Source: Adineta vaga | Taxonomy: Eukaryota > Animalia > Rotifera | NCBI GenBank assembly: GCA_021613535.1 | Contig: CP075496.1 | Span: 434,001 to 498,000, forward strand | Length of the DNA: 64,000 nt | Direction: 5' to 3' | Shown here: piece by piece, positions 46,300 through 50,863 of the stretch | How the letters are laid out: each line of letters starts with the position of its first letter | How positions within the stretch are numbered: the stretch's first letter is position 1 | Notes under the pieces: model-generated | The model's database searches: none | Told to the model about the DNA's origin: nothing | The model's input: the letters and a program-made list of their open reading frames with translations, nothing else | Program-made: the position numbers and the translations under genes

Positions 46300-47065
46300 G
46301 CGAACTTCAACATATTATATAATTCATAGAGTTGATGCTGTATCTCTCCCATCATTGTGATAATACTGGCTGAAAATTAGATACAATAAAATTATATTCG
46401 AATTGATATGACAACAAGCTTATTACTTGGATCAATTTGACAATATTGTTGTAAAAAATACCGAATTTTTCTATTTACTTTGTGTTTTGTTGCCTGCTTT
46501 TCCCTCTTTTTGTTAACTACTTTCAATCTTGTACCGCCCCATGATGAAATCGAACTCTTATATCTAAGAGATGATGAACTATCACTTTCACTCGATGAAT
46601 CCGTGATAGATAAATCAGACATCTTCAACTGGTTGATGCTTTTATCACCAAATGAACGATCATCTAAAATGAGAAAATAGGAGAAATCTTATATTTCTTA
46701 TAATTACATACTGATGTTGAATTCCTTCAATTCTTTTTCATTATGTTCAACAGGTTGTCTAAAGTCATTATAAAGATAAATAAAATACATATGGATAAAA
46801 ATACTTACATTTTATTGATCGATGAATTGTGTGGTAGAACAGTTTCGACATAAATAACAGAATTCGGAGGTAAACGTGCAAGTAATGTATGAGAAATGAT
46901 AGAACTATATGCTGTATCAAGAAAATGAAGCTTTTCATCCAAAGGTAGATTGAATTTTTCTCGAATGATAGTTTCTGTGCTATCCCATGGAACTTCTTGA
47001 TCAAATTTATATTTCATTTTCACATCACCACGTACAAAATATAGACATTTCAAAGTTGACGGCAT
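46300..47065 (-). CDS. Multi-exon hypothetical protein (ubiquitin/PB1-like N-terminal exon, Ser-rich and basic downstream exon)
   Basis: ORFs 46805-47065 and 46392-46628 separated by short intron-like segments; 3' end not resolved, may be degraded. Confidence 0.4.
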
Positions 47066-47565
47066 GATTGTATGTATAATAGCGATAGTAAGTGTTGATG
47101 CTCAATCCTCTGTACTATAATATGACTTTGTTTCTTTATTTGTTTTAATTCAATTCGATTCATTGGAAAAGATTAATCATTGATGAACGATATACTTAAC
47201 TAATAATTTTCAAGAAAACAACGTTACTTGAAAGATCAATTATTTTCTATCGACTATGAAATAGTCTTTTAATTATTCATAAATTTTTATAGATATCGTT
47301 GCTTGTCAAAATATACTATGCAGAAGTTCAAGTCTAAAAAAACAGGTTGTATAATCAAAGCAAACTTAAATACTCAATATATACCATAATAAGGTGAATC
47401 AAATGGTCCAACTATTTATTGATAATGAATTAAAATTAGATTTAAAATATTTTGATTATATGGAATATGTATATGGATTAGAAGAACATCGTGATGACTT
47501 TTCTCGAAAAATTCTTATCCGTGATCATTAATTAGATGTTTTTTGAATTCAACAAGATTAATTAT

Positions 47566-47900
47566 CGAAATAATTGATTTTTCAGTGAAGAGAGACGAAA
47601 TTGTGATTTTCTTCATTTTTCGACGTTCGTTCGTCATCTACGATGACATCGTCAGGACACCACGAACTACACCATCATATTTATTGAGAGCATTTTATTT
47701 TAATTTTTGTGTTTAAATCTTGTTCATAGTGAAGTCAAAATGCTCTCAATAAATATGATGGTGTAGTTCGTGGTGTCCTGACGATGTCATCGTAGATGAC
47801 GAACGAACGTCGAAAAATGAAGAAAATCACAATTTCGTCTCTCTTCACTGAAAAATCAATTATTTCGTTAAATTTGCATTTATTAAAACCTTTTCTGTTT
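47566..47900 (+). mobile_element. Penelope-like inverted pseudo-LTR insertion (131-bp perfect inverted repeat + 33-nt tail, 12-bp TSD)
   Basis: 47566-47696 is the exact reverse complement of 47737-47867 (40-nt spacer); unpaired tail 47868-47900; AAGATTAATTAT repeated directly at 47554-47565 and 47901-47912. Confidence 0.75.
47772..47813 (+). ncRNA. Degenerate minimal hammerhead-ribozyme-like motif (mirror copy on - strand at about 47620-47661)
   Basis: CTGACGA (47778-47784), T, stem II GTCATC-GTA-GATGAC, then GAAC GAAC GTC. Core GAAA appears as GAAC and stem I is weak. Confidence 0.5.
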
Positions 47901-48898
47901 AAGATTAATTATGTTTGACTTTAGGAAGATTTATTTTAAAAGAATTACAAAATCAAAATGATCAAAGACAAGACAAGCGATTGTTTGTAAGGAATTTTCT
48001 CTCTTTTTTAAGTATCACTTGAACCAGGATGGAAATTCAATACTGATGGTGTTTATCAAAGTCTTCATATGAAAGTCCTTTTATAAAACCATTAAGACCT
48101 GAAAATGAATTTGAACCAAATCTAAAACAATGGACTAAATATTTAAATGATCGAAATAATTTAGTTTATTAATAATACACAAAATCGTCTGACGTAAGTT
48201 TTATTTTTATTTTTCCTCTAAGAATTATTTCATTTTCTATTTTAGAGGAAAACAACGGTCAGTTGATGATGCTTATTGTTGTGTTAATGATTCAAATATA
48301 AAAATTATTAATACATTAAGAATTTAATTTAAAAGATTCAATGAAATATCATCACGATGGATTTAAACACGTCCACTTGGTAAACAATTCAATTGTAATG
48401 CAATGGGTATTGCTGCTGTTAGTTCATCAGCTGATTTAATGTGAAAATTCAATCTTTTATATTGGGATCATAATTATTTGTCCATGTTCAAATATTTATC
48501 ATTAGAAGTTCCATTCATTTATCAAGAAGATAAAACAAAAAAAACCAAGTGAAATTTCTGCAGAATTTTCAGATGATTTATATTTTGAAAATTTCTCATT
48601 GTTTTCACAATACCTTTAAAAGTGTCAAATTCGAAAGACTTTTAACTTTGGTGCAAATGGTAAAAAATATTTCGAATAACATAAAATAGAACTTATATAT
48701 TCATCTGATTTATCGTTTCATAAATGATTATTTATATAATGATTTGTTTAATAAGAATAAAAACGTTTTCTTTTTATTATTTAGAAAATAAATAATCGAT
48801 GAAATGAAACGTTAACTAAGAATGAAATTAGTAAGTGAAATAAAACAAAAAAACTTAGCTGAATTAATTTATTTTTTATAAAATCTTCACAAAAATGT

Positions 48899-49392
48899 CT
48901 AAACTGATCTCATAAATGAACCAAATTCTGATTTATCAATTTTTCCATCATGATTCACATCAGCATAATCAAACATCGCACCAGCTGGATCATATTGATT
49001 ACTTTTTCTTGCAACATTAGGTGCTCCAATACCGACATCAGGACCAAGACCATATGTATGACCTTCTTGAGCAGCTGCACCACTTGTAAATTTTTCATAT
49101 TCAATTGGATTTTGTGTAAAACCAGCAACAGCTACATCAAGACCAACTGGATATGTCACAGTTTCTGCTGCACCTGAAGACTTTAAAAAGAAAATAAGAA
49201 TTTAAAAATAAAATTTAATCAAATGAAATAAATTACTTGAAAAGCTTTAATATCTTGTTGAGAAATATTTCCTGATAATCTTCTTTCATTTTGAACTGGT
49301 CCAAGAAATTGTCGAAATTCTTTTTCATCAATAGTTCCATCATGATTTGCATCAGCTTGATTAAATTGATTATCAAATCTTTGAGCACTCAT
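48899..49392 (-). CDS. 145-aa protein with two EF-hands at opposite termini (2 coding exons)
   Basis: Exon 49392-49237 (DANHDGTIDEKEF) splices in phase 0 to exon 49180-48899 (DVNHDGKIDKSEF); Gly/Ala-rich linker. Confidence 0.8.
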
Positions 49393-50863
49393 TATTTGTT
49401 TTATTTATTTAAAATAGAATTGATTATTTTGATTAAACCTTGCACTAATAAATACTTACCTATGACGTTTACCTTCTAAATCAACCGGAACGATGAATCT
49501 AATCAAAAAAGAAGAAAAAAAAAAACGTATCAACGATTTTTCTCATCTATATTCATTCATTAAGTAAACCTCAAGGTTATTTCTGACATTGATATGAAAC
49601 ATACCATTCATTTTTTCCTTTTCTATTCAAAATTATCGATCTTTTTTTCTTTCTTCTTCTTCTTCTTCATTTAAAAATAACTCAATCTAGTCTTATAATT
49701 GTCCACTTGATAATACTTTGCAATGATTTAAGACGCAATTGATAATTACGAAAAAAATATTTGTCATTAGGAAATAAAAATATATAAGAAAAACAAAAAA
49801 ACAACATTCTTGTTTTTATCTATTTGATGAGTTTTATTTTTCATTGATATTTTAAATATTATGTTTACATTTTTATGAGAAATTCAATTTCTTTTTAATT
49901 GTAAACAATATTAGTTTTTTCTCTATAAAGAATTCAATAGAAGAAAAAAAAAGAAAGAATAATTGATATTATGAAGAAAGATTTCCATGAGAAGATAAAT
50001 CTTCTTTGTTAATTCGTTTTATTCCACTAAAATTAAAGAAAAAATAAATTGATTTTTCTTAAATATAAATTAACAAACCATGTTGAATCAATTCCAGCAT
50101 TGATATAAATTCCTTGATCAAAATAAATTTCATTTAAATGTCGATCAAGTGGTTGAAGAGAATTTCTTCGTAATTGATTTGGTTTTAATGAAAATTCTTC
50201 TTTTTCAACATGAAGATTGTCCATAGATTATTAGTTGATAATATTCTTTTCTCTTTAAAGATCGTATTTTTATCGTTTTCTGACATTTATAATTATATGA
50301 GAAAACAAAATAAGAAAAATATATTACGTGTTGACATTTATCTATTATTATTATTATTATCAGTTTTCTTCTTTTTTCTTTCCAAAGGATAATATTTGAA
50401 ATAATCTTATTTTATTTATTAAATATACTTTCAATATCCTCTTCCTCACCTTGTGATGTATCTATTTGAGATATTTTTTCTTAAAAACGAATTTTTGAAT
50501 GTATAGGTCATAAAGAACTTTCATCATTTGCTCTACAAAACTTCTGAGTTTTTCCTCAGTAATAGAGACCTGTTAACACTTTAATTCTATACGAACGAGA
50601 TCAATGAGTGCCATCTTGAGGGTGTGGGTGTTATTGATATGATTTTAAATTTGATATAAAAAGGGAAAAAAGTCGAAAATTTCTTAAAACGTACTTAAAC
50701 TACAGAAAAAAAGAAATATTTTCTTTAAAAATCTACGAACACGTGTTTTGAAAAACGTGAATATTATATAAAAATTTGTCCTCAATGAAATGATAGATAA
50801 GAATACATTTTTTATAAGATATATAAATATGTCAAGATTAACGACAGAAATTAATAAAAACAA

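Follow-up and report, generated by a model that had tools for sequence, protein, structure and literature searches.

The window analysed here is a 64-kb stretch of the Adineta vaga genome (C4:434001–498000), and it carries a 335-bp hairpin insert flanked by 12-bp direct repeats (TSDs). The coordinates of the parts of the insert, together with the TSDs of related inserts described below, are collected in Table 1. The insertion site is intergenic. It lies ~500 bp from the ATG (47065) at which a minus-strand gene begins; on the other side, an EF-hand gene, likewise on the minus strand, has its RNA-covered 3' end, and the site is ~850 bp past this end. At window 48747–49404 (frames 48902–49201 and 49222–49404), contigs of very high depth span the 3' end of the EF-hand gene. 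Window 46637–47061 is matched in a probable RNA run by a 942-nt contig of a ~90% paralogue, which skips 48 and 54 nt with CT..AC ends, that is, short minus-strand introns. One probable RNA run has no contig across 47062–48746, a span that includes the insert, which the original prediction had suggested would, if transcribed, give long dsRNA and be a possible source of small RNAs.

Table 1. Parts of the hairpin insert (window positions) and TSDs of four related inserts
Feature	Position	Strand	Remarks
Left TSD copy, 12 bp, AAGATTAATTAT	47554..47565	.	
Inverted unit copy, unit positions 153 down to 23	47566..47696	-	Outer end is the tail-less, proximal one
Minimal hammerhead core of inverted copy	47622..47655	-	3-nt CGA insertion, as in direct copy
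18-nt 3'-end remnant of upstream unit's tail (tandem junction)	47697..47714	+	
Direct copy of pseudo-LTR-like unit, positions 1–153	47715..47867	+	47715–47736 unpaired in loop; 47737–47867 is the right arm
Minimal type I hammerhead core of direct copy	47778..47811	+	CUGA-C-GA, bulged U, 6-bp helix II, GAA[CGA]AC-GUC
ATG-opened 28-codon frame, running to tail end	47817..47900	+	ATG 6 nt past predicted cleavage site
Tail, 33 nt, unpaired	47868..47900	+	Interval between the family's proximal and distal ends
Right TSD copy, 12 bp	47901..47912	.	Exact junction contig in three runs
TSD of C2:10097k copy, GAAATTAGTGAT			
TSD of C5:1935k copy, AAGGTTTTTATT			
TSD of C4:537k copy, GAAACAATT(C/T)TT			11/12 identical
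TSD of C5:2788k copy, ATAAATTTTGCA			

The original prediction had described 131-nt perfect arms, a 40-nt loop, a 33-nt tail and a 12-bp direct repeat, and each of these values was reproduced exactly on re-measurement. The arms are complementary at 131/131 positions, and the pairing extends to 135 nt at 99% when four flanking bases are included. When both strands of the window were searched, AAGATTAATTAT was found twice, and both occurrences flank the insert. The predicted RNA fold of the insert has an energy of −235.8 kcal/mol, compared with −68.5 ± 5.0 kcal/mol for shuffled sequences (z = −33.5). Rfam scans of the window region and four sibling loci gave only sub-threshold matches to miRNA precursors, and any long hairpin draws such matches. 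The longest frames in the insert (57–63 codons) consist of arm sequence, and a single ORF combining an RT of the Penelope-like element (PLE) type with a GIY-YIG endonuclease is absent from the 335 bp.

Read evidence for the locus consisted of short contigs in all runs, and these confirmed the right junction. A 239-nt contig with zero differences covers 47838–48076 (arm end, tail, repeat and flank) and is present in three runs of three studies, dated 2013, 2015 and 2022; its depth is close to that of one of two allelic contigs nearby, that is, about single-allele. None of the listed short contigs bridges the left junction or the palindrome. Read variants without the 3 nt at 47627 derive from other family copies. 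The flanks at 47239–47438 and 48128–48308 are each represented by two contigs of similar depth in three DNA runs, one with the window sequence and the other ~5–6% different (two haplotypes), and at 47909–47985 the reference form alone was seen among the contigs. The original prediction proposed looking for an empty allele with a single 12-mer; no contig skipping 47566–47912 was seen among the short contigs, where absence proves nothing at such lengths, and in the paralogous region the sole paralogue (C4:11295710, 78%) stops 200 bp before the insertion point.

A foldback chimera of long reads was considered, as the listed contigs leave the palindrome unbridged and PLE tandem and inverted structures are known to trouble assemblies (PMC8557442). 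Nevertheless, we regard an assembly artefact as extremely improbable, given the exact right-junction contig in three independent studies, the TSD around the unit, and four other loci with the same architecture and TSDs of their own.

These other loci were found by searching the whole genome (100.8 Mb, six contigs, ~27% G+C), and the window insert belongs to a small family with about six loci; as the original prediction had anticipated, the arm is not single-copy. A genome search matched the sequence on both strands at C2:10097k, C5:1935k and C4:537k. A subfamily copy with ~71% identity, at C5:2788k, came from the hammerhead pattern search and a covariance model; the covariance model of the unit also gave one decayed hairpin, at C3:17354k, and a U-specific pattern search gave no further loci. 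The genome search also found a 100-bp fragment of the unit at two C3 sites. These two loci were ruled out as a larger parent element, being one old fragment within a >20-kb, 99% segmental duplication; the duplicated regions, C3:17504000–17523999 and C3:19522000–19541999, are separated by 2 Mb and share ~99% identity along 20 kb or more.

Five inserts (the window copy and those at C2:10097k, C5:1935k, C4:537k and C5:2788k) each have a 12-bp TSD, and all of the TSDs are different. Alignment of all arms defines a unit of ~186 nt, equivalent to window 47715–47900. The order is the same in every insert: an inverted copy, 3–38 nt of the 3' end of the tail, and a direct copy starting at unit position 1. 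The tail-less outer end falls at unit position 153–155 in the window, C5:1935k and C4:537k inserts, at the corresponding point in the C5:2788k subfamily and earlier, at ~131, in the C2 copy, while the tail-bearing outer end falls at unit position 180–186 or at the equivalent point in the subfamily. All inserts have the tail at exactly one end, which may be either side, and its length is 33 nt in the window copy and 29–37 nt in the siblings. Two inserts have it on the long copy and three on the short one. Inner junctions vary from insert to insert; in the C4:537k copy the short arm is the outer 50 nt alone. Because the side of the tail and the inner junctions vary among inserts, each hairpin was made at insertion rather than inherited whole. 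Judged from these alignments, the hairpins were built from two outward-facing 3' ends and are not 5'-truncated copies of one another.

The same alignments bear on a foldback or MITE-type DNA transposon, whose transposase would make 12-bp duplications. Such an element would agree with the long inverted arms and with a TSD of constant length in five copies. The two outer ends, however, are unequal, as only one of them has the tail, and the tail is not always on the same side; in one copy an arm comprises just 50 nt of the outer part, and another copy ends ~20 nt early. Since the outer ends lie at unit positions ~131, 153, 155 and 180–186, the termini are not conserved recognition sites, and the argument against a MITE in the original prediction is upheld by this lack of conservation among copies. 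Moreover, the arms carry an oriented hammerhead and ATG layout resembling that of a Penelope pseudo-LTR. No DNA transposon superfamily is known to give 12-bp TSDs. A foldback transposon is, in our judgement, highly improbable.

Arm identity within a copy is 98–100%, whereas copies differ from each other by 7–15%. The insert had been called very recent from its arms; the arm identity holds, but it is no proof of age, since copies 7–15% apart also have 98–100% identical arms. Either the inserts are young and derive from diverged masters, or their arms have been homogenised by gene conversion, so that recency is uncertain on these comparisons. The closest relative of the window copy (C4:537259–537462, 93.5%) is just 55 kb off on one chromosome, and this proximity may reflect local reinsertion. 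At C2:10097098 the tail-less end falls ~20 nt short, with seven T after it (in the sense of the copy), and the TSD of this insert matches unit positions 141–152 at 9 of 12 positions, which suggests that priming took place at a microhomology within the unit.

The end of a tail directly before the start of a unit constitutes a partial tandem, and it was found in 5/5 inserts, including the ~71% subfamily. This junction sets the family apart from solo pseudo-LTRs, in which a full-length Penelope (inverted pseudo-LTR, pseudo-LTR, ORF, pseudo-LTR with tail) has lost its ORF by recombination between the direct pseudo-LTRs. From the typical structure (PMC3846280), such a deletion would leave an inverted pseudo-LTR, one direct pseudo-LTR and a tail within one TSD. 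However, what stands before the direct unit is a tail end and not a 3' UTR, the tail-to-unit-start junction recurs in all five inserts, and an ORF-bearing relative was not found in searches of the assembly. The presence of the junction in all five inserts implies that the template was already ORF-less, and its occurrence even in the ~71% subfamily indicates that the ORF-less unit is old and propagates as such. The unit is accordingly best read, from its junctions, as a self-standing old lineage and not a local deletion product, and we consider the origin by recombination very unlikely.

The unit holds the elements of a hammerhead: CUGA-N-GA, a single bulged U, a 6-bp helix II (GUCAUC/GAUGAC) and GAAAC-GUC. 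Cervera and de la Pena listed the characteristic traits of minimal PLE hammerheads (PMC4209133), and the unit has the bulge between 9 and 10.1, the G10.1-C11.1 pair, a long helix II and a palindromic 15.2–16.2. Across copies, position N7 is C, G or U, loop 2 is variable, and one helix pair is G-U in one copy. Helix II co-varies among subfamilies (GUCAUC/GAUGAC, GUCAAC/GUUGAC and UUGAC/GUCAA). A genome-wide search with the hammerhead pattern gave 15 matches, against 1 in the reversed control, and three unrelated helix II sequences form six consecutive pairs each, compared with ~1% by chance. The Rfam hammerhead models gave zero matches at E ≤ 10 in the window region and four sibling loci, as expected because the hammerhead is a minimal one without helix III. 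In both arms of the window copy a 3-nt CGA insertion interrupts GAA|AC, while the C2 and C5 copies have an unbroken GAAA box; the hammerhead core of the window copy is probably dead, as judged from its sequence.

Minimal hammerheads of the same type also occur, on both strands, in unrelated ORF-less hairpins with pseudo-LTR-like arms (C1:4913345–4913522, C5:3883711–3884038 and others). In the C5:3883k/C1:1638k family some ends extend ~30 nt beyond others (a tail), and no clear TSD was found at the C1:4913k and C5:3883k hairpin families.

A small hammerhead-bearing unit could also be a metazoan non-LTR retrozyme, in which the 186-nt unit would be cut by its hammerhead and circularised and the circle reverse-transcribed. 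The size of the unit, the hammerhead, a template of more than one unit and the low GC content all fit, PLEs have been proposed as mobilisers of such elements (PMC7229834, PMC7761336), and a rolling template would account for the tail-to-start junction. On the other side, the hammerhead is the minimal PLE variant and not the canonical type with loop contacts, tandem arrays were not found in the genome (at most 1.2 units stand in direct order), and both arms of the window copy carry the core insertion. In addition, the 18-nt remnant at the tandem junction of the window copy is of the tail type found in the C2 copy and does not match the insert's own 3' tail; since the remnant and that tail differ at several positions, the template was not a monomeric circle. 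A retrozyme is therefore an unlikely explanation of the family.

A complete element with the same ends is present in the genome. PLE loci were located by searching for the GIY-YIG Pfam domain and with a 1080-aa Penelope ORF as query. PLE ORFs lie, for example, at C5:761420, C1:7719581, C1:16065429, C1:12432222 and C1:14660580, and the insert at C2:285173–292234 (7062 bp) comprises a complete copy and a 5'-truncated copy, head to head on opposite strands. The complete copy has an RT/GIY-YIG open frame of 1310 aa, with a match to GIY-YIG. Both 3' ends face outward, a 31-nt tail is present on one side only, and the insert is flanked by a 12-bp TSD, GAGTTTAATCAA. Its hammerhead is of the same type, with the palindrome AGCU, and lies 9 nt before the ATG; 12 codons of the ORF are inside the pseudo-LTR. 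The tail length, open frame and ORF codons in the pseudo-LTR are those of Pen2a-type elements (Arkhipova et al. 2013, PMC3846280). By analogy with Pen2a-type pseudo-LTRs, the 28-codon frame of the window insert is most readily seen as a vestige of the start of an ORF. The layout of the unit is collinear with the C2:285k pseudo-LTR, and their nucleotide likeness is not significant (z about 1–1.4). Two further PLE loci that were checked had no internal repeats, and none of the PLE loci compared with the unit has sequence in common with it.

An autonomous element with unit-like nucleotides was sought genome-wide by blastn, covariance model and pattern search, with the best candidates scored, and none was found. 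Likewise, no PLE ORF adjoining a family copy was found in the genome searches. The original prediction had proposed an arm search for further hairpins and for copies next to an RT and GIY-YIG ORF; these searches revealed the former and not the latter.

Structural traits were compared with published descriptions (PMC8557442, PMC3846280, PMC4209133 and PMC11167929). In PLEs, inverted copies, partial tandems and a tail of 30–40 bp on one end have been described (PMC8557442), pseudo-LTRs are the sufficient cis elements (PMC3846280), the tail corresponds to what lies between two RT start sites, and cleavage by the hammerhead is dispensable in vitro (PMC11167929), and PLEs are the presumed mobilisers of small hammerhead units (PMC7229834, PMC7761336). 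The Penelope-type reading of the original prediction was supported: the insert has a partial tandem, a TSD, a hammerhead, a one-ended tail of 30–40 bp and an inverted copy with 5' truncation. The four other family copies flanked by TSDs show these end traits again, as does the RT/GIY-YIG Penelope at C2:285k. The insert is very probably a non-autonomous, pseudo-LTR-only PLE derivative made by target-primed reverse transcription, with a partner that we infer.

The proposed course of insertion of this PLE derivative is as follows. The ~186-nt unit consists of upstream sequence, the minimal hammerhead, an ATG and two alternative 3' ends ~31–33 nt apart, and the template would be an RNA intermediate with more than one unit. 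A GIY-YIG endonuclease, presumably supplied in trans by an autonomous Penelope, would make a cut with a 12-bp stagger, and both 3'-OH ends of the cut would prime reverse transcription. One start would be at the distal site, giving the tail end (the right side in the window insert), and the other at the proximal site, giving the tail-less end (the left side). The two cDNAs would then be joined head to head. In the window insert, the longer cDNA may have run past the start of the unit into the tail of the previous one, leaving the 40-nt loop.

The TSD may hold a clue to the choice of start site. The comparison used five one-tailed inserts, namely four family members and the Penelope at C2:285k. 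When the TSD, in the sense of the tail-less copy, was compared with the first 12 nt of the insert's own tail, 6, 7, 6, 8 and 8 positions matched (sum 35/60), compared with null values of ~3.7 per insert and ~18.6 summed, and 0/200,000 resamplings reached 35 in this small, post hoc sample. We tentatively consider, as a possibility that falls short of an even chance, that the family is a minimal substrate (≤186 nt) in which one 12-nt 3' overhang pairs with the first 12 nt of the tail in the RNA and thereby primes reverse transcription from the proximal site, while the complementary overhang cannot do so and primes at the distal site, resulting in one tail. Alternatively, the likeness could arise if the endonuclease favours tail-like targets. 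If the pairing is real, it would explain why a PLE insert has one tail, and the hammerhead broken in both arms of the window insert would mean that ribozyme activity is dispensable in vivo.

The family can be placed among known systems. Like the EN+ Penelope of Adineta vaga of the Pen2a_Av type (PMC3846280) and the C2:285k insert, it has an inverted and a direct pseudo-LTR, a short TSD, an optional tail of ~31 nt on one end, a minimal hammerhead just before the ATG, and an ORF start within the pseudo-LTR and tail. It differs from them in having neither an RT/GIY-YIG ORF nor any internal region, and in a pseudo-LTR sequence without significant similarity. The TSDs published for A. vaga PLEs are 8–10 bp (PMC3846280), whereas those of the window insert and C2:285k are 12 bp. 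The family resembles the pseudo-LTR-framed captured sequences and solo pseudo-LTRs of A. vaga (PMC3846280) and non-autonomous Chlamys elements such as MRC1 (PMC8557442) in being TSD-flanked and non-coding, and, as in the captured sequences and MRC1, pseudo-LTRs alone would serve as the cis sequences for mobilisation in trans. Unlike these, it carries nothing between the repeats and is a lineage of pseudo-LTR and tail only, kept through ~29% divergence.

Metazoan non-LTR retrozymes (Cervera and de la Pena 2020, PMC7229834) are likewise small (170–400 nt), AT-rich, hammerhead-bearing and non-autonomous, and they too are presumed to be mobilised by a PLE. They form direct tandem arrays, have canonical type I hammerheads and give abundant circRNAs, in contrast to the inverted pair, minimal hammerhead and tail of the window insert. 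Two adjacent RT start sites bound the tail also for PAc (Poseidon, Anolis) in vitro (Frangieh et al. 2024, PMC11167929). As for PAc, the broken core of the window copy may point to hammerhead cleavage being dispensable. The start sites of PAc in vitro have no homology to the cleaved DNA, whereas in the family the TSD beside the tail-less end is similar to the first nucleotides of the tail. The insert is a small and clear-cut case of an element type already known and not a new kind.

PLE integration is the least understood mechanism of retrotransposition, and the complex ends of these elements confuse annotation; hairpins of this type should not be named MITEs or miRNA precursors. The family packs the whole PLE end signature into 200–335 bp and narrows the cis requirements to ~186 nt. 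It lends structural support to the published idea that small non-autonomous units with a hammerhead are moved by the PLE machinery, and it is chiefly useful as a compact, naturally occurring substrate on which to study PLE integration.
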